A program made the translations under genes and the position numbers. A stretch of DNA of 62,823 nt, counting the filler, from Klebsormidium nitens (Eukaryota > Plantae > Klebsormidiophyceae): assembly GCA_000708835.1 (NCBI GenBank). It is 6 parts of 6 records of this genome, joined end to end, with 100 filler letters (N's around TTAATTAATTAA, not from the genome) between each part and the next. Parts side by side here need not be neighbours in the genome. Positions count along the whole stretch, not along the records: positions 21,031 to 44,960 come from DF237607.1; 5 more parts are not named here. One strand, given 5' to 3'. Every line of letters starts with the position of its first letter. Positions within the stretch are counted from its first letter, which is position 1. Below, in pieces: positions 21,454 through 35,987 of this stretch. The notes beneath the pieces are model-generated. The model worked only from the letters and a program-made list of their open reading frames with translations, searched no databases and was not told the DNA's origin.

Positions 21454-21948
21454 ATGAACCGATCAAAGCGCTTTGCACTCATACGTGAAGCCATGGATAT
21501 GCTGTCCTTCACGGATGCCGCCGTCAACGTCCGGGTTGTGTACCGAGCAAGGAATGGTAACATCTAGGACAGGCTGGAAATATCACGTCTCGAAGGACGC
21601 AGCATGTACCGTGTAGTAAGTCGGTCCACTGGTGCATCTGTGATCCATTCAGGGGTGTCCAGCCAAGTGATGCAAGACCTTCGGGCTCTCATCGATCGCA
21701 ACTTCGACATCACTTGGATCTCGATAGTGGGTTGGGGCCGGTATCATGGACACGAGGATGGTGCATGGCAGGATGTGATTCTTTACCCGGGCGAAGGACG
21801 TGTGCCCCTACCACAGCGTAGATTGAGGATTGATGCCTGGAGCAACATAGAAAACAGCCAATACAACCTCCCCGGCATCCCTTGGAGAGGAGCATCGAAT
21901 GTAAACGAAAACGAGAGCGATAATGATTTGGGAAACAATAACGAGTAA
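21454..21948 (+). pseudogene. Orphan intronless gene, copy 1, with premature TAG at 21565
   Basis: MNRSKRFALIREAMDMLSFTDA...GNI*DRLEI aligns with copy 2 (GNNWDHLEI); the stop sits at the Trp codon. Confidence 0.75.
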
Positions 21949-21985
21949 AGGGATGACGCAAAGTTTTGTTGTTCTTTATAAACAA

Positions 21986-22351
21986 ATGCGACGATCACAG
22001 CGCTTTGCACTTATTCGCGAAGCGATGGACATGCTGACCTTCACGGACGCCCTTGTCATAGTCGAGGTCGTGTATGAGGAACGCAACGGTAACAACTGGG
22101 ATCACTTGGAAATAAGGCGTTACGGAGGGCACAACTTTTGGGATGTTTTAAGCATCAACACAGGTGAAACTGTGACTGATTCAGGGGATCCCAGCCAAGT
22201 GGTGCACGATCTCCGAGACCTCATCAATCGCAAATATGACATCACGTGGATTTGCCTGAAGGGTTTGGGGCGGAATAGAGACATGCACGAAGTGGTTTTG
22301 TATCCTGGTGGAGGCCGACCCTTGCCACAGCGCGAACTGCCAAGGTTCTAA
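21986..22351 (+). CDS. Orphan intronless gene, copy 2 (121 aa)
   Basis: MRRSQRFALIREAMDMLTFTDA...YDITWI...VVLYPGGGRPLPQR; paralogue of 21454-21948; TTTATAAACAA-ATG upstream. Confidence 0.7.
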   Translation: MRRSQRFALIREAMDMLTFTDALVIVEVVYEERNGNNWDHLEIRRYGGHNFWDVLSINTGETVTDSGDPSQVVHDLRDLINRKYDITWICLKGLGRNRDMHEVVLYPGGGRPLPQRELPRF

Positions 22352-23553
22352 GTGCTGAAACCCGCCAGAACAGCCAGCCCATGGTGAAGCTGAGCCTTTG
22401 AAGATATAGGTGCTGCGCTTAGGAGCCGAAGTCGATGAAGCTTCACGAATTTCAGCTAGAACTAGCGGATATCTCGAAGTACTTTCAAGCACGCAAGGAG
22501 GACGAGGGGCTGACATTTGATGAAGAACCTCTTCTATCACCTTTCACCCCAACCCTTTGAAAGCTAGCAAACATGTTTACAAGCTCCAGACAAAGACGGA
22601 CGCCACACAGTATGTTACATCTGTTTGTGCTTTCCAAGAGNNNNNNNNNNNNNNNNNNNNNNNNNNNNNNNNNNNNNNNNNNNNNNNNNNNNNNNNNNNN
22701 NNNNNNNNNNNNNNNNNNNNNNNNNNNNNNNNNNNNNNNNNNNNNNNNNNNNNNNNNNNNNNNNNNNNNNNNNNNNNNNNNNNNNNNNNNNNNNNNNNNN
22801 NNNNNNNNNNNNNNNNNNNNNNNNNNNNNNNNNNNNNNNNNNNNNNNNNNNNNNNNNNNNNNNNNNNNNNNNNNNNNNNNNNNNNNNNNNNNNNNNNNNN
22901 NNNNNNNNNNNNNNNNNNNNNNNNNNNNNNNNNNNNNNNNNNNNNNNNNNNNNNNNNNNNNNNNNNNNNNNNNNNNNNNNNNNNNNNNNNNNNNNNNNNN
23001 NNNNNNNNNNNNNNNNNNNNNNNNNNNNNNNNNNNNNNNNNNNNNNNNNNNNNNNNNNNNNNNNNNNNNNNNNNNNNNNNNNNNNNNNNNNNNNNNNNNN
23101 NNNNNNNNNNNNNNNNNNNNNNNNNNNNNNNNNNNNNNNNNNNNNNNNNNNNNNNNNNNNNNNNNNNNNNNNNNNNNNNNNNNNNNNNNNNNNNNNNNNN
23201 NNNNNNNNNNNNNNNNNNNNNNNNNNNNNNNNNNNNNNNNNNNNNNNNNNNNNNNNNNNNNNNNNNNNNNNNNNNNNNNNNNNNNNNNNNNNNNNNNNNN
23301 NNNNNNNNNNNNNNNNNNNNNNNNNNNNNNNNNNNNNNNNNNNNNNNNNNNNNNNNNNNNNNNNNNNNNNNNNNNNNNNNNNNNNNNNNNNNNNNNNNNN
23401 NNNNNNNNNNNNNNNNNNNNNNNNNNNNNNNNNNNNNNNNNNNNNNNNNNNNNNNNNNNNNNNNNNNNNNNNNNNNNNTTGGGCGAAAATGGTAATAATA
23501 ATAAGTGTGCAGAATGCAAGACCTGGCAGCAATCTGGTTGCGAGTTTGGGCGC

Positions 23554-25990
23554 TCACGCGTCTTCCTTGTTGGGAGGCTCGATCCTGACTCTCAGACTGC
23601 CGTCCACCATGACGTGGAACTCGATGTGCAGGAATATTTTCTTCCCCCCGCTCTTCCACTTGGGCCTCTCGATCCGGAACTGCTGCACCACAATGCACTC
23701 AGCAAGGCCGTCGTAGTCATCACGGTTGCCCTGAAGGACTGTAAGGACGAAGCTCGTTCCCATGACATAGCAGTTGTCTTTGCTCTTCGTCCGTCCGAAA
23801 GGTGTCCCAGCTGGCAGAACGATCTCCATGCGGCTGTACAGACAAAAAGAGCGGGTCAACCGAGATTTCACGTGGCGTGATTACTTGCAAATGAGCGTTT
23901 GGAACTTCACTCGCCAATCCACTTCTTCCCAAGACTGGCTACTCATTCCTGGGCTGTAGAGGAGAGGCTTCACAAATGCCACTTACTATCTCTCAGTCGT
24001 GACATCATGGACTCTAAACCCGATGCCGATCGGAAGCGACTCCGCGATGCTCATCGCGTACACGCCGTGCTCATTCTGTCCCGACTGTCTGGCTTCCGAG
24101 ATGGATGCCATCAGAGCTGCTCCCCTCGCAACGGCCTCCTCTGGTCTGTCCAAGACCTCCACCTTCTCTCCAAAAACCTTCCGCAGACTGGATTGGACCA
24201 GCAACATCTTGCTGGATCCACCCACCATGAGGACCTGTAACACATTACTGCTGCACATCACTTGCTTACACTTATATTTTCGCCCAAACTGTCGCCCCTG
24301 TAACGTAACGGGGGAAACAAAGAGAGCAGAAAATGGCAATAATACCAGAGTTAACTGGCTTTCCTCTGGCCGCCAGGCTGGCCTGGTACCAGAAGAAACT
24401 GTTGAATTTAGGACAACACTTGCTGTGATTCCTCATGCCATAGACCTTCGGCCCATAACGAGTACGCCTGCGGAACACCTCGCGAACTGATTCACTGAGG
24501 TCCCATCAGAGGGACTGAGATGGTGCCTTTGGATGGAGGTCTCTATACCGTGTGAGACGGGGCGCGCTGAGAGCAAGGGTCCAAGGTCATTGAAGCCCAG
24601 TGATGCAACATTGGCTGTTAGCATACCATCTCCCTAGGATTAAGTTGGGTCATTTAAACGCAGCAAACGCACCTGATCAAAATCAAGCATTACACGCAAC
24701 CTGCGACACTTTCAATGAAAACTGTAATAAAAGCATCCACCGCTTGTCGAAGAAGAAGGAATCCGTTAGCTTGTCAGGTTTTGGAGGCCTGAGGATTGTG
24801 AGGGGCGTTTCTGCTTCTTTACTGTGTTTTCAGTGTGTCAATCTGAAGACACAGTTCTGCAGTAAGGTCAGACTTTTCTTCGGCCTGCACTGCCATTTTT
24901 GGGACTGAGAGCTGATGATTGACAGCAAGCAGAGAAGGAGCCGTTGACCTCACCTTGTCCAATTTGCTCCGGTCGAACGGTGGACACTCCGAGCGCACGT
25001 CAGAACCTGCCATGGTTGCCTCCCCCGTGATCTTGATGGCCTCGTCCACTGTGCGCATACACGCCTCCAGCAGTCCAGACAGCGCCTCATCGTAGGCTTC
25101 CCTCGAGACGTTCACGTCCAAAGTCACATCCTCCCCCGTAGGTGAACGGCAGAATGATGCGACAGTGATCGTCTGGACTTGCAAATCAGGGTCCTCCTGA
25201 AATGTTTCCTTGGCCACTTTGCAGGCCCTCTGCAGCTCGGCAGCCTTTGCAGCCGACGGTTCCAAAGCACTGGGGTGGTCCCTCTTGAAGGAGTCTAGAA
25301 CCTGTTTGCATGGAAGTGCACAGTTCATCAAAATTACCATTTTCACCCAAAATGCAACGTATCAGGTTGCTACAACGAATGCGATACATGGCCCGGCCTA
25401 GTACCAAAATGACCCGCTGTATTCAGGACACCCCTTGCTAGGATCACACAAGCTTCTCTGAAAGGCTTCATTTTCTGCCCCAATTCTGATGTCAGTGACA
25501 ATCTGCTGCTCAATCTGAGCTCTGACATTTTCCCCTGCACAGCGGTTCACTTCTGCTTAGCCACACATGCTTTGCTAAAGCAGGAGACTCACCAGCTTTC
25601 GCATGGCATCGTCGAAATCCTCTCCCCCAAGAAACATGTCGCCCTTCTTCCCTGCCACGGTCAGGTTGTACTTCCCCTGTTGGTACACAATGGAGATGTC
25701 CAGGGTGCCTCCCCCGAGGTCGAACACTAGGAACCAAGAGTACTTCTCAGGGCTTGCCTCGCCCTCGTACCAGTTTGCTAGTGCAGCTGTGGGCTCCCTT
25801 GCAAAACCCTCGGGGTATGTTTCAAGACCTGCTAATCTCAGCATCTGGTGCATTGCGTCAATCTGAACAGAGCTGAAGTATGCAGGGATGGTGACCATGA
25901 CCCTCTTTTTGTCAGCACCATGCTTGTCGAGGGTTTTGTCCGCGAGCCTCATGATCTCCTTCAGGATCTCTGCTCCAGCGGCCTCAGGAG
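23554..25990 (-). CDS. Divergent Hsp70-family chaperone, spliced, 5' end lost in a gap
   Basis: TIPAYFS, REPTAA, VFDLGGGTLDIS, GGEDFD, VLMVGGSSK, PEEAVARGAA. Phase-consistent GT-AG exons: <=25990-25593, 25301-24954, 24234-23987, 23833-~23554. Confidence 0.85.
24367..24730. repeat. Dispersed repeat inside an Hsp70 intron, inverted copy at 43350-43500 plus 44738-44960
   Basis: Direct reverse-complement alignment with high identity. Confidence 0.9.
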
Positions 25991-26882
25991 NNNNNNNNNN
26001 NNNNNNNNNNNNNNNNNNNNNNNNNNNNNNNNNNNNNNNNNNNNNNNNNNNNNNNNNNNNNNNNNNNNNNNNNNNNNNNNNNNNNNNNNNNNNNNNNNNN
26101 NNNNNNNNNNNNNNNNNNNNNNNNNNNNNNNNNNNNNNNNNNNNNNNNNNNNNNNNNNNNNNNNNNNNNNNNNNNNNNNNNNNNNNNNNNNNNNNNNNNN
26201 NNNNNNNNNNNNNNNNNNNNNNNNNNNNNNNNNNNNNNNNNNNNNNNNNNNNNNNNNNNNNNNNNNNNNNNNNNNNNNNNNNNNNNNNNNNNNNNNNNNN
26301 NNNNNNNNNNNNNNNNNNNNNNNNNNNNNNNNNNNNNNNNNNNNNNNNNNNNNNNNNNNNNNNNNNNNNNNNNNNNNNNNNNNNNNNNNNNNNNNNNNNN
26401 NNNNNNNNNNNNNNNNNNNNNNNNNNNNNNNNNNNNNNNNNNNNNNNNNNNNNNNNNNNNNNNNNNNNNNNNNNNNNNNNNNNNNNNNNNNNNNNNCATC
26501 AAGAATTCGCCAACTCGATGAAAAAGTTCATGCTAACACTTTCGGAAGTATCGACGGTTGTTAACAATTCCGGTTTTTCCCAAGTTGGGTCGACATGTAC
26601 CACAGAATGCCACGTGGCGCATAAAAGACGAGTTTGGTTGCATCCGACGGTTCCTCGCGCGCCAGTGTCCTTTGGAGGTCACGTACTGGGCTGCCCGACA
26701 CACCATAGGCTGTTGATTCTGCACACAACGGTATTGGTAGTCCTCAAAAACCGGCTGGAAGGATCAAGGCAGAGGCAGAGGGTTCTCACTTTGCATTTGA
26801 TCGACTGTGGGGTTTGTGACGCCCATGTTGAGGAAGAGTTGTTGGTCTGCATTCACAGAGGCTTCACAGCAGAAAGGCAAAC

Positions 26883-27398: not shown

Positions 27399-27873
27399 TA
27401 TTGTACTTGCTCTGTGCTTGCTTGACAGATGATGCGTTGCTGTCTCAGGTTGCCAGCTTGCAGAATGCATCTGCCTACTTGACACCACACTGTTGACGTG
27501 GTATCGCATTGAACCTCACACGTGTCTCGAAGGTGAAACAGATATATCGAGTTCTCAAGAACAGATACATTACAGATGGCCTTGCATTTGAGGCAAGGTG
27601 TTCAAAGGAAGGAGCGCTGAAGTAGAGCAGGCACCCCTTGAAGGTACAGTCCTATCTGTCCTGAGTCCAATGTCTGATGCATGCAGAAGATAAAGAATGC
27701 TCAGAATGTACAGGACAGAGGGCAGCATGTACAGGGCATCAGAGTGTAGCAGGGGGGTAGCAGATTGCAGCAGGGGAACACCAGAGTGCAGCAGGGGGGC
27801 AGGGGGTAGAATGCAGGAGAGTGCAGCAGGGGGGCAGCAGATTGCAGAGTTCACAGCAATAAATAATGCTTAC

Positions 27874-29585
27874 CGCCCGATGAAGTTTAGATCTTCGGAA
27901 TCCTTTTTCTTGTTCCCGTCTTTCTTGCGCAGCTTCACTTTCTTGCACCCCAGTTTGGTAGCCTTGATGAAGCGATTGAGTGCCTCTACTTTTGGCTCAA
28001 TGTCCAGGTTGGCAATGATGGTCCTCTTGAAGACCATCGCTATCAAGCGGAGGAGCGTGTGGAGGATACAGAGGTAGAGGAAGACGAGTTTGATGTCGAA
28101 GAGAGGGGGACATCCAAACTTCTGGCCGGCGTGCTTGAGCTGGTAAGCTGCTTTCTGCGCTTTCGTAGTTGGGCCAACTGAAGCGTCTACGGCAGCCTGG
28201 TCTGGGAATGGCTCGTTACAGAAGGGGCATTTGACTTCTGGCCCGGTGTGTAGGGGGCGATGGTCAGCTGCTGCCATCTCCTCTAAGGTTCTGGCCTTCG
28301 CATGCATTGGCCCCCGTCGCCCCTCTGCGTCGGTAATGATGGTTCCGTAATCCTTCTTGTGCATTTTGCAGAATACACACCCCTGTGTGCATGAGTGCCC
28401 AGCATGCCCCAACACCTCAGCTAGGAGTACATAGTCAGCTCCCATTGTCTGCTTTATGACAAAGTGGACGCCATCGACATCCAGCCCTAAGGCTGTCAGC
28501 TCCTTCATAACATTCAGGAAGGGCCCAAGATACTCCTTGTAGTTGTCGTAATTGTCCTTTCCCTCGAAGAGCAGAATGCACCTCATGTTTTGAGGTGCTT
28601 GAGCGCAGACCTGACCATTGCTAACAAACTTGAAGCCAAACTTTGAGTGTTTTATTCCCCTCAGAATGCCTGCAGCATCTCCGCCCCAGTGGATCCAAGC
28701 TTGCATAACCAGTTGGTCCACTTCACTCTGCAGGTACCCATTTCTACGCTCATCTCGAAGCCCTTCTTCTACCACCTTGCGGAGCTCAAGCCAGCAAGCA
28801 GTCCTTGCCTCGTCCTGAATGAGAGGGATAACCGCAGCTATTTCTGCCCGGAGCTCGGTGACCTGGTTCTTGGATTTGAACTTAGGTATGAAAACTCCGC
28901 TCCCTTTCTCAAAAAGTTCTTTGTGCACCCATTCCTTCTTTGTCTCGCTGTAATCTTTCGCTGCGATGTTAATCAGATGCTGGAACTTCTCGCCAGCTCG
29001 TATCTTGCAGTGAATCTGAAGAGTAAGACACTTCTCAAGGGTCCAGTACTCCTCAATCTGAGTAATGACCTCCCGGCGGATAGGAAGGACCCACTCAGGA
29101 TTGTCTTTACAGATGGTTTTGAAATCTGTGAGGGTAATGCCGTGTGTCTTCACTTCTTGGTACAATGTAGGGTTTCTGAGACAGTGTTCAAAGATTGCTT
29201 GCTTCGTGGCAGCAACTGTGGCGTATTTGCTTTCTAAGAAGGATCCCAGTTCAGATGCCAATCTCCTTTGAGTGGGAGCAGAAGTTCCTCCTTGGAGAGG
29301 CCTAGGTTGAACTCGCTCAGCCACTCCTTTCAAGCGTAATCTCAGCCGAAGTGAAACAAGTTGGCTGTTTTTCTTGTCAATGATGTCTTGAAGGTTCTGC
29401 AGTCGTTGGGATTGCTCTTTCAATAAGGCTGCTGCTGCAATCCTGGTTTCTTCGATATACTTGTCAAACCTGGCCTGAATCACTTCCTCACTCCTTTCTG
29501 CACGTTCTGCAGGTGTTTGTGGAGCAAGTTGTGTGCCTCCCGTCTTCTTGAATTTTCGATCTTTTCGAGGCTTAGCAGCAGTCAC
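27874..29585 (-). mobile_element. RAG1/Transib-like DDE transposase (long exon; C-terminal part not resolved)
   Basis: IHWGGDAAG (first Asp), MGADYVLLAEVLG-x9-CVFC (RAG1-type GYD..L..EV.G-x9-CxxC), CILH (C/DxxH motif); GTAAG donor at 27873. Confidence 0.62.
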
Positions 29586-31266
29586 TTTGTGATTCTGGTA
29601 AAGGTTGTAGTTTGATAATGGTTAAATGTTCTTCTCAAAGATTGCCTCCGGATTTGCATACATTTTTCTGATCGAATGAATTATAAGAGCATGGTGCATA
29701 TGATCAGAATATGTCATGAGCATTGTTATAGTCCATTGTAAGAGTTGCATTGTCATTCCCTTTAGTGAATCTGAAATGTCATGAGATTCACACATATGCA
29801 TACAATACATTGAATGTGCAACATGAAAAATATGAATTTGTGTATGCCTATGTAACTTGCATTGATGTGATGATAGTCAAATTGCAAGGTTCAATTGTTG
29901 CATCACTGTAAGTTTCTAGCTACTTGTCTGAATGTTTCTCAGAACTAGGTAACACATTACTGTCGTCCATTTTAACGAGACGCGCCACAATGGTCTCTAC
30001 AATGCGCCCATTTTTGGTGAGGCACATTGTCGGAACAACCTCCGCTTGTGCAATCTCCTTGTAAACAGCTCTATTCATTGTGCACTGGATGCAAGGAGAT
30101 GGAACACTTGCATATTTGCTGGCTTTAAAGCTTCGATCCATGTTGACAAGCGCCCTATAATTATTCTGCAAGCAAGATTAACAGTGTTCGAATGCAATTG
30201 AAGTTCCAAGCTGCTCGAGCCTAAGTAAGACTGGACACCATTACCATGCTGAACCGGCGTTACCACACTGAGACTGTCGACTGCATTCTCGATTGCAATT
30301 CTAAAACCGGTCGCGCGCCCGAGAACCGGGTAAGGCTGATCGTACGTAAAATTTCAGTCCGCAGTCCGGCGCTGCGTTAACTTTTCGACGATAAATTTTA
30401 CGGACTTTATCGAATTTCCGAAGTTTATCGATGAATTCTGCCGACGGTGACCGTCCGGTTTTCATCCGGACGCGCGTCCGGGCTGGTTGTGAATTGTAGT
30501 TTCTTCCAAAAACCGGTTCGATTACTCGCCTTGATCAGCCTACATTCAATCGTGACCGTTGACGAGATTCATGTGCAGAAATGCCCCGCTGTGATAAAAA
30601 CGTGCTTTCTTTCCAAGGCTTTGTTGGCGCACTGCTGAGGAAATTGAAATAGCTCATGTGGCGGTCGCATTATTTGCCAAGCTCATATAAAGTATAGCCA
30701 TAGCTAGTAGGTACCACATGTGTAGACTGCGCGCTATACTTGACAAGATCAATGGCTCAAAAGGCCTCAACCGGCAACATAGATTCAACAACTAGACTGA
30801 AAAGTGCCGGGTACTGAATGGAATGCATGACTCGGAGGCAGTGAGTCAAAGCACTAGGCCACCCGCTATGTCAAAGATCCTCTAGGAGGATAATTGCAAG
30901 CTCGTTTGTAATATATACGTGCAAATCATTTAGAACGATCTCGGATCGCATAATTGCACATATGTATCGTTTGTTAAATCCGGACTTGCACGAAGGACCA
31001 GAGTTCATTTCGTATTGCCTTTGTAGAGTTGGTTAACGTGTACACAATCGGAGCAAAGGCCGGCCACATGCGTCGCGATGAGGGTTTTTGATGATGCACT
31101 TACATAAGCCTTTTTGGAACCTACGCATGCCGCGGAATTGCCCATGGCAACAAAGGATAGCACCATCCTTAACCACGAGTATCTCTCACATCTTTTTATA
31201 TCAAGATACAATGAAAAACAAGCTTGCTCAGTCGAAGGCCCAATTTCACCGCAAGCTAGCAGCGAC

Positions 31267-34200
31267 TCAAGGCAACCTCCGGGGCTCACAGGTGATTTCC
31301 AAAGAGTACTGCGAGATCGCCTTCTTGATCGCAACCGATCCTGGTCCGGCGATGGGCACTCCTTTGAAGTGAGGGAATGTGTCCGAAGGGACGACAAAGT
31401 ACAACTTCACCGCCCCACTTTGGTCCCCGGCCCCGTCCGCCCCACTTTGGTCCGTGGCCCCATCCGCCGCATCTTGCAAGACACCTTTCTTCAAGCTCGT
31501 GATAGCCGTCTTCAGCCCAGCCAACTGCATTGGCCTTGCCTCTGAGAACCCCTTCTTCCGATTCGCCACAGTCACTTGAAACAGTTTGTCCGGCTGCATG
31601 CCTGAATCCACTGCCGGCTTAGTGCCACTCACAGGCCTGAAATACCTCCCATCTTCCAGCTCCTCCACCTCCTTCCACTTAGTGAACTCGAACGTACTTG
31701 ATGTCGGTGGGAGCGTAACGGCCCCTTCATCACCGGTCGCCAGATTCCGGGTTCTGAACTCCCCCCCTTCTGCCATTTTTTCGTGAACGTAGCTCTCCCA
31801 CAAAAGGCCGCGCAACCCTGCAACCCTCGTATCCCCTGCAGACGCCACGAGAAAGCGGCGGAGTTTACCCTCGTCTTGTCTCGCAAGCCGCTTCACCACC
31901 GCGTCCGAAACGTAGTCCGAGGCTGGCTCCATCCAGGTGGTCATGAAGTCAGGCCCCGCCCTCAAGTGGAGGACCTTATGCGAGGCAGCGTCAGGCGCGG
32001 CGGTTGCTTTGACGGCTTGCACGAGGAGATCGAAGTCCTGGGCATCGATGGCCTTCTCCAGCAGGCCCTGCTCCCTCTCGCCCACCTTCTCCACAACGTA
32101 GCGCGGAATGCCACCCCACCTGCACAGGGACCAAGCAAGCAAGTGAGGCGCAGCAAGTGAGGCGCAGCAAGTGAGGCGGTGAGGCTGGTGCGGCCAATCT
32201 TCTCTTAGGCCCAACTCGTCATGAATGCACTTACAGGGACGGCTGCAAGTCAGGTGGACGATCTTGATGACACTGCAGGTCAATGTGCTTGCTTCAAACA
32301 TCGCTGGAGTCGCGGAGCCGTACCGGTGGTATCGCCCAAGCACGTCCTCAATCGGCTTCTCCGGATGGATTCTCTCGCTGCACTCGGCCAGCTCGGGCCA
32401 CGCCCACACGTCCATGTACAGCCGGGTGTATCCTTTCCTCTTCCAGACCTCCTGCCACAGGAGCGCATGATAATGATGCTTTTTACAAGGGTCCAACTAG
32501 TGGACGCCGGGGATTGGGATGATTCCACCAAACGGCCATGACAACGAAACAACCATGCCGGCGAGAACGAGCGTCAATGGCAGGACGGGTGCAAGTGCAG
32601 CTGCGTTCTCGGTCTGGAGAGACGTGCAGAATCTAAGCAGGCCTTACTTGGTAGACGTCCGGATTGGGGGAGGTAATCAGGACCATCCTCGCCCCATTCG
32701 GCAGCGAGCCAACTGTCGACGGGTCGAGGCCATCCACCAGGTACCTGTGAACAAGTGGCTTGATAAGCCCTTCAATCGTTGAGGAAGCAGCCGAAGCACA
32801 ACCCATGATGCATGCGCTGGCATGGCTGCCGGGTTCGCTCGACTGCACAAAGCGCAGGCCTTCATTTTCAAACGAGGGGCTTAGGGACTTCGGGGGCCGG
32901 TCGGACCATCTTGACCAACACAGTTGAGAATGCACGGACTGGATATGCGACTTACCGCACGTCAGGGTTGTCCAGCTCTTTTCGGAGAGCCACACGATCC
33001 AGCTCATACGCACCGTCTACCGTAAGAAGCACCGGCGTGGGGCAGTCGCCCCTCTTGACGACGACGACACGCCGCCCCTCGCACGCCCACCGGTGCAAGA
33101 GCTTGTAACCAAAGATGGATTTTCCAATGCCTGCACAGCAGCAAACCGATTTCGCCCATTTCGGGACCTCAGGGCCATCTCTCAGAGCAATCAGCAAGCC
33201 AATCTGTGGTCTTCAATGTGCAAGCATGTGATTAGGTCTAACGGGGAAGGAGGGAAAAACGAATCTTGCTGACCTGGGTTGCCTAAGATCGCCACTGCCT
33301 CAACGTCCCCTTCACTGCTCGTCCCAGCAAAGAGCTGATCCAGCAACCTATCCAGTGGGCCATAGCAGTCGCAGTTGAACAGCTTGTTGCCGAGCGCCTT
33401 GGATCCAAGAAAGCTTGTCCCGTCCGCAAGGGTCATGATTCTCCCGTCATCAGACCACGTCGCACGCGGCAACGCCAGCCAGAAGTCTCTGAGCGACTCT
33501 TTTGCACCTGCACACAATTGAAGTCTTTTTCTTTTGAGTGAGTGCTTGAGACTGCCTAGACAAGGCCCAGCTCAACCTGCTTTCAGCCAGCGACAGGAGC
33601 AACTGCTTGCACTCGATTTGAGGATTTGTGTTGGAGGCCACTTTTGGGCATCTACGAAAAGAAGTGCATACATCAATGAAGCTTTTCAGAGCCAGGAGCA
33701 AGCCTCCTACTGAGGTTCTCGGGTCCGCTAGAACTGCCAAGTCATTCTTGTCGCACGATGAACTGGCACCCTGCCAATGCAAACGAGCCTGTCCGCATAA
33801 GCTCACCCAGGACATTATTTATGAGCAAGAAATTCTCGGCTGCCCTGCTCCACTCTGGAAAGACATGCTCACTCGGGCAAGCAGAAATATCTTTGTACGA
33901 GAAGGAGTAGCAGAAAGAACTTTGTGTTTCCAGCTTCCTCCACTATGGTCCGCATCAAAAACCACACCCACCATGAAAGCAGCTGCAATCGCACCGTTTT
34001 GTTGCCAAGCAGTCTGGTAATCTCGAGCAGCTTAACAACAGAAGGCATGCAAAAAGACTCCAATCGAGCACCCAAAACGGCGGAAGTCTATGTGCAAAAG
34101 TAACCTGCCAAAAGATGACTTCAATCTGACTTGAACTTCCCTTCCAAACTGAGAGGCCAAAGGAAGTGACTTACTGGGGCCCACAATTCCTGCAGCACTC

Positions 34201-35355
34201 AAGCCTGCACGCAAGATGAAAGTTGTGTTTCAGCACTCATGAGTGACGGCACTCAAAAGTCTGCTACTGTGGTCCTGATGCTAAAAGCTGACCTGTGCGC
34301 CGTGTTGCACTCGAGTAGGATGAAAGGAGCATCAGCAGAGTCTCTTCTCAAATTCTCTTCTCATGCTGAGCATACATTGGCATTAAAGCAGAGACTGGCT
34401 GACAGGGGCCATACCCTGCAAAGGGTGTGTCAAATATCATGGGCAGAACCATGTCCCAGGGGCTCATTTTTCCCAGACTTCAAAGCAAGCTTCTGAAACA
34501 GCCCGTCCAGAAGCAGGATTAATGTAAAGAAGGCCTGCTTTGGACCAGTAGCTCTGATACTGATGGGAAGAACACGTTGCGTGGCATGAACTGCAAACAA
34601 AGCCAGATACAAAACCCTCCTTGGCGTGTGCCCCGGCGCTCTCTTGAGAAACATCGGCGAGCAGCAGGACCAATCCCTGCAGCACAAGATTGACAGCAGA
34701 ACGCTGCTCATGATCATTCCCATCTGTGCGCTGGTTTGCAGGGCTGCTCCAAGGTGAAGATCTCTGCACAAGACAGCACAAGACAGCTCTCCATGCGCCA
34801 GACGACGGAAGACATACCTGGGGTCTGCTGCAGCTTCAGCTTTTCCACCTCCACCTGCGCGAGCGCAGTCAGTCGCTGCTCCAGCACGGCCTTCTGCTGC
34901 TCCAGCGAGGCCTTCTGCTGCTCCATCGAGACCAGTCTTTGCTCCAACAAATCTGTGCTCTTGCCATTAGCCGCAGCCGCAGCCGCAGCAGCAGCCACAG
35001 CATCGATCTGCTTCTCCAGACGTTCGATTCTCTTCTCCGCACGCTCAACACTCGACTTGAGAGCCTGGGCCTCTTCCTTGAGCTCTGCCACCTGAGGCTT
35101 AATGTCATCCCCATTAGAACTTCCGGTAGACTCTGCTCTTCCCCGGGGGGTCTCTGCCCTCGGCGAGAGGCGCCTCAGTCCTGACCCCACCCTGTACTCG
35201 GAGTGGAACCGGCCCAGCCTCGATCCCTCAAACAGAGGGCGAGGAAGTGCCCTGAAAGCGAATCGATGGGGAGTTGCGCGGGCGATGTCTGCATGCCCGC
35301 ACGAAAACGAAGCCTTCGCCCCGGCCGCCTTGAGGAGCACTGCAGCAGACGCCAT
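31267..35355 (-). CDS. Crinkler/RHS-type P-loop NTPase plus restriction-endonuclease-fold protein with transit-peptide-like N-terminus and coiled coil (674 aa, 6 exons)
   Basis: Exons 35355-34818, 33507-33274, 33130-32956, 32744-32648, 32451-32324, 32119-31267, all GT-AG and phase-consistent. Walker A GNPGIGKS, Walker B YLVDG, LYMDVW...EL, WGGIPRYV, SHKVLHL, AVDS...LFQVT. Confidence 0.85.
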
Positions 35356-35987
35356 AGAACCTCACCAGCAAGAGACCAGTGAATGCAGCGCTTGAGCCCT
35401 TCCAACCTGCCACTCAGCCATCGCACTTGACTTCGACCACGATGTTGGTCGCAGAAGCTGAGGCCCAGAAGGGGGCTAGATTCAGGGGTGCCAAGCGTCG
35501 ATATGCCCGATTCAGGGGGTCAACCTTTCTCACAGTGGGCGAGCTTTTTCAGGACGAATCAAGCGACAATGGAGCGACCATTTTAAGGTGAAAATTTCCG
35601 GGAGGTTCTGTGCTCGTCTATGATGTTGTGCCCAGGAAAATCACGAATCTCCTCTGTGGCGGCCATCCTGCTTCGAGAGTAACCTTTCCACTCTGGCCTT
35701 TGCTCATGCAATGGCACTAAGTATCCCAAAGCTCTGGCGGGAGTTCTCTACTTGCGTCTCTCGTTGCTGGAAAATTCTTGCACTGCCCTCCAAGGGCTAA
35801 CTTGAAACCAGAAGGTACTGAAGTGAGGAGGTTTGATGAGATACATTCCCTGTCATGGTCTTATTACATACATATTCCCAACACTCCATCCCAAATGGAA
35901 AACCCCTATATCATATCTGTTGTCTTTTTCTACGCCGAATAGGCTGACTCGTACGGATATATTACACTCGTTACGGCAGACTCGCCG

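Follow-up and report, generated by a model that had tools for sequence, protein, structure and literature searches.

The gene KFL_006580150 of the alga Klebsormidium nitens raises the question of how a protein module known mainly from pathogen effectors, the Crinkler-type nucleoside triphosphatase (NTPase)-nuclease module, is built into the genome of a close algal relative of land plants, and where in the cell its product might act. We analysed a stretch of 62,823 nucleotides (the window), filler included, in which six parts of six records of assembly GCA_000708835.1 are joined end to end; the gene lies on the minus strand at 35355..31267, in the part taken from DF237607.1 (positions 21,031 to 44,960). 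A preliminary description, made from the sequence alone, had read this locus as an intact Crinkler-type ATPase-nuclease gene of six exons whose first exon encodes a leader resembling a plastid transit peptide. We found that KFL_006580150 is a real, transcribed gene of seven exons with a 684-residue product. It probably represents an expressed two-unit gene, in which a Klebsormidium-specific header is joined to a Crinkler-type NTPase-nuclease-like module, and its role would be one in intracellular conflict. The gene was already annotated as a hypothetical protein and its module belongs to a large family, so the advance is one of architecture and not of kind.

To establish the gene model, each proposed exon was translated in its own frame and the open reading frames (ORFs) of the window were listed. 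The exons proposed earlier (35355-34818, 33507-33274, 33130-32956, 32744-32648, 32451-32324, and 32119-31267, all with GT..AG borders) sum to 2025 nt, or 674 codons, and both this arithmetic and the exon-wise translation agree with the claim that they splice in phase. The reading frame opens with the ATG at 35355, three codons after an in-frame TGA (35364-35362), and closes with the TGA at 31269-31267. The motifs quoted in the preliminary description, RLYMDVWAWPEL, WGGIPRY, SHKVLHL, and VDSGMQPDKLFQVT, were all found in the exon translations, and the Walker A motif is indeed interrupted by an intron (33273-33131), with GNPG on one side and IGKS on the other.

Transcript evidence came from public sequencing runs. 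A run search found the stretch contained in 20 runs from 7 studies, and for four likely-RNA runs, one from each of four studies, the Logan contigs were aligned to window positions 31000-35700; as this evidence consists of contigs, strand and transcript ends are not strictly fixed by it. The introns of 143, 211, 196, and 204 nt were removed exactly as modelled in each of the four runs, so four of the five proposed introns stand. The fifth, a first intron of 1,310 nt, proved to be two introns flanking a micro-exon, again in every run. The micro-exon adds 10 residues and keeps the frame (G LSAAGIVGP S). Transcripts thus do connect exon 1 with the core, as had been proposed, but by way of the micro-exon, and the product has 684 residues instead of 674. 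Word depth was 130-600 in the spliced contigs versus 5-20 in the intron contigs. The seven-exon model matches letter for letter, micro-exon included, the public record GAQ90585.1 (P0181; hypothetical protein KFL_006580150, Klebsormidium nitens, 684 aa), which was reached by a cluster look-up as a member of the cluster of P0001, the copy described below. The early searches were run exon by exon, and the whole-protein analyses used this record. A literature search for the gene, protein, or run accessions gave no match, and one on Klebsormidium together with Crinklers gave one paper, which concerns oomycete saprotrophy (PMC7585586).

Window-identical contigs reach ~35716-35809 upstream of the ATG, so the 5' leader measures 360-450 nt. 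It contains four upstream ATGs, which are not kept in the paralogues. A donor-like GTGAG at 35364 was rejected as a splice site, the contigs being continuous there. At the other end of the gene, the last intron (32120-32323) is in frame without a stop codon, and a 14-nt unit occurs in it three times in tandem; retention of this intron would add 68 residues and leave the frame unbroken.

The C-terminal module

As judged from sequence and the predicted structure, the core of the protein (residues 190-684) consists of a P-loop NTPase, a helical linker, and a C-terminal restriction-endonuclease-like domain. A word search was performed with ORF 31270-32496, a natural ORF that continues across the in-frame last intron. 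The matches were a 93%-identical copy (P0001), metagenome relatives at ~32% identity, a Thraustotheca 'crinkler (CRN) family protein' (E 6e-20), and a Cavenderia protein, and the core exons are all collinear with full-length relatives. A profile of the last-exon region matched 4,775 cluster representatives at E<=1e-3 and 514 at E<=1e-30, and further members of the module family came from Capsaspora, Cavenderia, and Linnemannia.

The preliminary description had called this core Crinkler-type, and three results bear this out. First, PF20147, the Pfam Crinkler header, was present on 4 of 42 long members of the module family; one bearer is a Phytophthora lilii relative (residues 7-115, 70 bits) and another is a Rhizophagus protein. 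Second, a BLASTP comparison between the last exon and the P. lilii protein that bears PF20147 gave E 1e-32, with 30% identity over 252 residues. Third, a fold search of the ESM atlas found a chytrid Crinkler cluster at a template modelling (TM) score of 0.72. The Crinkler-type call is valid for the C-terminal module and not for the header. An NTPase followed by a helix-turn-helix (HTH) and a restriction endonuclease (REase) is the commonest C-terminus of Phytophthora CRN proteins, and the module also occurs behind other headers in free-living eukaryotes (PMC5289972). The helical linker of KFL_006580150 takes the position of the HTH in this scheme (Zhang et al. 2016, as summarised in PMC5289972).

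The NTPase was evaluated using an AlphaFold2 (AF2) model of the full-length protein, whose predicted local distance difference test (pLDDT) score averages 83.8 and exceeds 90 over residues 190-684. The Walker A motif GNPGIGKS occupies residues 265-272 and a Walker B-like YLVD residues 327-330, and among 68 relatives G265, P267, G268, G270, K271, and D330 are near-invariant. In a Foldseek search with the full model, the nearest structures were STAND/AAA+ NTPases: ZAR1 came first (E 1.8e-6, over 519 columns), and SAMD9, RPP1, NLRP14, Avs3/4, AVAST5, CED-4, and NOD2 also matched, with E values from 1.8e-6 to 1e-4 and a probability of 1.0. The predicted domain thus has an NB-ARC/NACHT-like fold, a likeness of fold only. 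At the level of Pfam families, nSTAND3 scored 16.1 bits (cut-off 27.2) and NACHT 14.2 bits (cut-off 26.7), and the paralogue P0183, at 26.4 bits, was also under the cut-off in the STAND-type comparison. A profile searched against PDB sequences returned only generic P-loop matches (E>=0.008) and nothing for the C-terminal domain.

The C-terminal domain has an alpha-beta-beta-beta-alpha-beta order, and its conserved residues are E509, H513, R525, D572, Q582-V-T584, and LYFVVP at 640-645. In the AF2 model, the first helix carries E509, one strand begins with D572, and the strand after it carries Q582-V-T584 in the place that (D/E)xK has in restriction endonucleases. A Foldseek search of the domain model against PDB gave nothing at E<=0.001; VIA-align listed mostly PD-(D/E)xK nucleases, namely XisH-like 2okf, R.BspD6I, McrC, NucS, LmuA, Bse634I, SdaI, Hjc, BstYI, and BamHI. 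On these models, a nuclease fold is likely.

The dN/dS ratio (nonsynonymous to synonymous substitution rates) of the nuclease exon against the 93% copy was 0.34, a value that points to constraint. A 93%-identical copy of the last exon and the 3' flank (L001/L002; runs SRR14092359 and SRR14092358) diverges 5' within the exon; it has therefore been truncated or rearranged, and it comes from a different sample.

A header exon shared among paralogues

Exon 1 had been described as encoding a coiled coil after the leader, in place of the usual ubiquitin-like Crinkler header. Neither exon 1 nor the whole protein matched PF20147, and the AF2 model has no beta-grasp but disorder and two long helices, in agreement with the replacement. 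The coiled coil likewise corresponds to a predicted helical hairpin, with helices at residues 89-129 and 135-177 and pLDDT values of 93-98. Pfam gave only generic coiled-coil noise on the hairpin, and a search of the Atlas by features with the header gave no usable match. The Atlas structure search with the header returned generic helical hairpins including PspA/IM30, which were not taken as kinship.

Residues 1-200 of the public record match four other K. nitens proteins, KFL_003970120, KFL_003110020, KFL_005780020, and KFL_010070020, at 58-73% identity. In the alignment of these paralogues the leader is 64-84% and the hairpin 58-78% identical, whereas the remainder is only 24-28% identical; for the modules, BLASTP gave 27% over 307 residues (E 8e-22). 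The identity switches exactly at ...LKLQQTP, the end of exon 1. The loci of two of the four paralogues were mapped (KFL_003970120 and KFL_003110020), and in both a phase-1 GT intron follows the equivalent ...LQ(Q/R)TP. The similarity extends beyond the coding sequence: in blastn comparisons a cassette of 5' leader, exon 1, and the beginning of intron 1 matches the KFL_003970120 locus (L003) at 83% over 1153 nt, from 35720 to 34584, and then stops within intron 1, and it matches the KFL_003110020 locus (L004) at 75% over 892 nt. The start of intron 1 (34588-34817) is 81-83% identical among three paralogues, as high as exon 1, after which the similarity is lost abruptly; this start either marks where the copied unit ends or is a conserved element for splicing or regulation.

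Other paralogues carry the module behind other N-termini. KFL_008520010 has a module like that of KFL_006580150 (51%) and a diverged header (40%), and its first exon also ends in a phase-1 intron, at a diverged sequence. In a third paralogue type (P0173 of K. subtile; KFL_001970180), the module stands behind a quite different N-terminus. Since the same header occurs with divergent modules and the same module with other N-termini, header and module have been combined in several ways. Exon 1 behaves as a lineage-specific, shuffled header, and the cassette is a result added to the preliminary description. The header paralogues share one N-terminal function, and the sharing does not indicate which one.

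Some further observations concern individual paralogues. In P0173 and P0178 (the latter KFL_001970180, locus L006:6001-8568), the module is preceded by an N-terminal part rich in Cys and His and by a 2A-like ribosome-skipping motif (..LLMIGAIESNPGPP..); a scaffold end truncates the copy of K. nitens. As annotated, P0182 (KFL_003970120) and P0185 (KFL_010070020) lack the strand region in which their sisters have the nuclease-like motif ..AVQFT.., which may reflect decay or mis-annotation. Apparent single-nucleotide differences at 35185, 35187, and 35192 in one run (X10) were rejected as alleles or editing. They are the sequence of KFL_003970120 and spell K55 and C57, so KFL_003970120 is expressed too, and this explains the contig breaks at ~35158-35228.

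Where and how the protein may act

The mechanism that we propose for KFL_006580150 has two units. The first, exon 1, encodes a predicted disordered basic leader of ~85 residues and then the helical hairpin; the second, the NTPase, linker, and restriction-endonuclease-like domain, is the module that also forms the C-terminus of many Crinkler effectors. The cassette is a copied one: in five or more K. nitens genes it precedes, across a phase-1 intron, one or the other of two divergent forms of the module. This arrangement parallels the Crinkler design of a conserved header and a variable C-terminus, built here through exon shuffling. The NTPase may serve as a nucleotide-dependent switch or oligomeriser, aided by the hairpin, and would license the nuclease-like domain to cut nucleic acid in intracellular conflict. 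Candidate conflicts are defence against viruses or mobile DNA, or the behaviour of a selfish element. The header would determine where or with what the protein acts, and organelle import is one live option.

The nearest known proteins are the CRN effectors of oomycetes, chytrids, and Glomeromycota, such as P. lilii GMF31914.1 (P0015) and Rhizophagus irregularis EXX53242.1, whose module is homologous from the P-loop to the LYFVVP strand. The motif order is shared (R..CY, GxPGxGK[ST], Y.VD, SP, Y.P.W..E, WGGI, SH, E..H, GG.F..R, D...FQ.T, LYFVVP), as is the logic of a conserved N-terminal header placed before variable modules at a fixed junction. Unlike these effectors, KFL_006580150 has no PF20147 ubiquitin-like header and no LxLFLAK or HVLVxxP; its header is a presequence-like disordered leader plus a hairpin on a separate exon, the junction is a phase-1 intron, and the host is a free-living alga in which nothing suggests delivery into another organism. 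Under a strict definition of CRN membership, the protein has the C-terminal module and lacks the header.

The STAND switches, which include plant CC-NLRs such as ZAR1 and the bacterial Avs/AVAST proteins with nuclease effectors, have the nearest NTPase fold. They resemble KFL_006580150 in having an N-terminal coiled-coil-type element before the NTPase and an effector domain fused to the switch, but KFL_006580150 has no NB-ARC/NACHT Pfam match at threshold and no LRR/TPR-type repeat sensor, and its nuclease-like domain is C-terminal. McrBC (an AAA+ NTPase with the PD-(D/E)xK protein McrC) is a weak match with no sequence similarity; KFL_006580150 would combine both activities in one polypeptide, with Q-x-T for E-x-K. 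A Crinkler-like genomic parasite (PMC12957317) is comparable in that it is Crinkler-derived, occurs in a non-pathogen, no longer has the canonical header, and is interpreted as acting in intragenomic conflict. It differs in having an ART toxin domain and not NTPase-REase, in its occurrence in animals, and in that no replacement header cassette is described for it.

Several observations weigh against the two-unit account. No Pfam, NCBIfam, or PADLOC model was above threshold on the KFL_006580150 protein: the core exons had no match when scanned singly with Pfam and NCBIfam, and whole-protein Pfam and PADLOC scans gave only sub-threshold P-loop and coiled-coil noise. The Arg of the near-invariant R..CY is Asn in this protein, and the family's near-invariant His of S..H after FQVT is missing. 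The canonical PD-(D/E)xK catalytic Lys is also absent, Q-V-T standing in its place, so nuclease activity of the C-terminal domain is something that we infer. Finally, the cassette is no less similar in its non-coding flanks than in exon 1, so the header copies are recent, and conservation of the header may reflect recent copying more than selection. Within exon 1, dN/dS was 0.46-0.68 in the leader and 0.35-0.47 in the remainder.

The localisation of the protein depends on how the leader is read. Its description as acid-poor and basic holds: residues 1-67 contain 40% A+S+T+G, 18% R+K, 4% D+E, and 12% Ser+Thr (8/67). The leader begins with MAS, its first acidic residue is residue 23, and no Arg occurs within the first 15 residues. 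Residues 12-86 have pLDDT values <50 and no secondary structure in the AF2 model, and a motif ...RR(L/F)xPRA↓E is conserved at residues 61-68. Going by sequence, this composition is compatible with a chloroplast transit peptide or a mitochondrial presequence about equally.

If the first ~67 residues served as a chloroplast transit peptide, with cleavage close to ...PRA↓E, the NTPase-nuclease and the header paralogues would act on plastid DNA, with possible roles in organelle genome surveillance, inheritance control, programmed death, or defence. The host K. nitens (Streptophyta) is a streptophyte alga with a primary plastid, and the MAS start, the Arg-free first 15 residues, the late first acidic residue, the low D+E and high R+K content, and the disorder ahead of the first folded element all favour this reading. 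The leader character and an Ala-Glu junction (PRA↓E or VRA↓E) are present in 6/6 header-bearing proteins, the diverged paralogue included; this junction resembles the stromal peptidase motif (V/I)-x-(A/C)↓A. With a maximal hydropathy of 1.6 over 9 residues, the leader is not hydrophobic enough for a signal peptide or membrane anchor. However, the Ser+Thr content is low for plant-type transit peptides, and the Arg richness and a helical moment of 0.62 at residues 31-50 suit mitochondrial presequences equally. Disordered basic N-termini are also common among nuclear and cytosolic proteins, and Crinkler-type modules are otherwise described as nuclear-acting (PMC5289972). Plastid targeting of the KFL_006580150 protein is for us a tentative possibility, and the transit-peptide explanation as a whole is equally tentative. 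We are similarly reserved about the wider proposal of an organelle-directed conflict or immune system that would destroy nucleic acids and follow the Crinkler principle of header and module. In such a system, a small, diversifying family of Crinkler-type, STAND-like NTPase-nucleases would be imported into plastids or mitochondria with the help of a shuffled header exon of the 'transit peptide plus coiled-coil' type.

Alternatively, the header could be a trafficking or docking module with no organelle signal. Its task would be release to other cells or, within the cytosol or nucleus, oligomerisation and regulation in the manner of the coiled coil of CC-type NLRs. The combination of a conserved header, variable modules, and a fixed junction is a hallmark of Crinkler-type effectors, and alternative alpha-helical headers are reported from free-living eukaryotes (PMC5289972). 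The top Foldseek match of the full model, over 519 columns, is a CC-NLR, ZAR1, and the hairpin is the sole confidently folded part of the header. Nevertheless, the header is without a signal peptide-like hydrophobic core, the hairpin resembles generic helical hairpins only, and the long disordered leader, conserved in character, would be left unexplained, so we consider this alternative rather unlikely.

The leader could also be a mitochondrial or dual-targeting presequence, with the protein acting on mitochondrial nucleic acids. It contains 10 Arg in 67 residues and few acidic ones, has an amphipathic stretch at residues 31-50, is predicted to be disordered, and shows an RR-L↓S arrangement at residues 61-64, which we take to resemble an R-3/R-2 processing site. 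On the other hand, the first 15 residues are Arg-free in 5/6 paralogues, and the putative helix is broken by prolines. Mitochondrial targeting of the KFL_006580150 protein, like the explanation built on it, is unlikely in our judgement, and what is not assigned to plastid or mitochondrion falls to no organelle targeting.

The view that KFL_006580150 is a selfish or decaying mobile-element remnant, incidentally expressed and without host function, follows the published view that NTPase+REase modules are transposon-derived and is favoured by family birth and death (P0182 and P0185 apparently have no intact nuclease core), by the two near-invariant residues changed in the protein, by the 2A-like motif of one paralogue type, as in retroelements, by a possible RAG1/Transib-like ORF 1.7 kb downstream (a lead only), and by the Crinkler-like genomic parasite described in free-living eukaryotes (PMC12957317), but it is very unlikely in view of an ORF intact over seven exons and correctly spliced in four studies, the low dN/dS of the nuclease exon, and terminal repeats or a transposase not being linked to KFL_006580150 itself.

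Under the two-unit account, a close algal relative of land plants has the module behind a header of its own, and the copying of this header as an exon cassette onto two divergent modules shows that intron-mediated exon shuffling can rebuild a 'constant header, variable toxin' design. Should the leader be an organelle presequence, the genes would form a rare organelle-directed family of conflict-type nucleases, which bears on the surveillance and inheritance of organelle DNA. If the protein is not organelle-directed, its layout of coiled coil, STAND-like NTPase, and effector would be useful for understanding the origin of plant CC-NLR-like immunity.

Feature coordinates and neighbouring sequence

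Table 1. Features of KFL_006580150, with positions counted along the window.
Feature	Position	Strand	Basis or remark
5' untranslated leader	35356..35810	-	window-identical contigs from ~35155/35228 past 35700, ends ~35716-35809
Header cassette: 5' leader, exon 1, and first ~230 nt of intron 1	34584..35720	-	blastn against paralogue loci
Exon 1 (header exon), codons 1-179 + 1 nt, end ...LKLQQTP, then phase-1 GT intron	34818..35355	-	contigs
Leader, residues 1-86	35098..35355	-	AF2 pLDDT, composition, paralogue alignment
Predicted helical hairpin / coiled coil, residues 89-177	34825..35091	-	AF2 model
Intron 1a, 613 nt, GT..AG	34205..34817	-	joint in 4/4 runs
Micro-exon, 30 nt, LSAAGIVGP + split codons	34175..34204	-	two joints, 4/4 runs; present in GAQ90585.1
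Intron 1b, 667 nt, GT..AG	33508..34174	-	contigs
Exons 3-6 and introns 33273-33131, 32955-32745, and 32647-32452	32324..33507	-	P-loop NTPase domain, residues ~190-401
Last intron, 204 nt	32120..32323	-	sequence and contigs
Helical linker after WGGIPRY, residues 402-493	31843..32118	-	AF2 secondary structure
Predicted alpha-beta-beta-beta-alpha-beta domain, residues 498-676	31294..31830	-	restriction-endonuclease-like
3' untranslated region	31043..31266	-	contig ends 31043-31227

On the same strand, 1.7 kb downstream of the gene, lies an intronless ORF of 571 aa (27870-29585, minus strand) with no Pfam match. Its language-model look-alikes are RAG1/Transib-type RNase-H and zinc modules (score 0.91-0.95), and it is possibly a transposase remnant. 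Apparent 'AT-rich islands' in the composition profile were rejected, the low-GC bins being runs of N (scaffold gaps) at ~22640-23500 and ~25990-26500. At 21604-22351 on the plus strand, two consecutive ORFs, the first of which (21604-21948) was scanned with Pfam and gave no match, repeat a unit of ~110 aa (..DLR.LI.R..DITWI..V.LYPG.GR.PLPQR.L..). Hsp70-like coding pieces (PF00012, E 1.3e-16), split by an assembly gap, are found at 24819-25952 on the minus strand.

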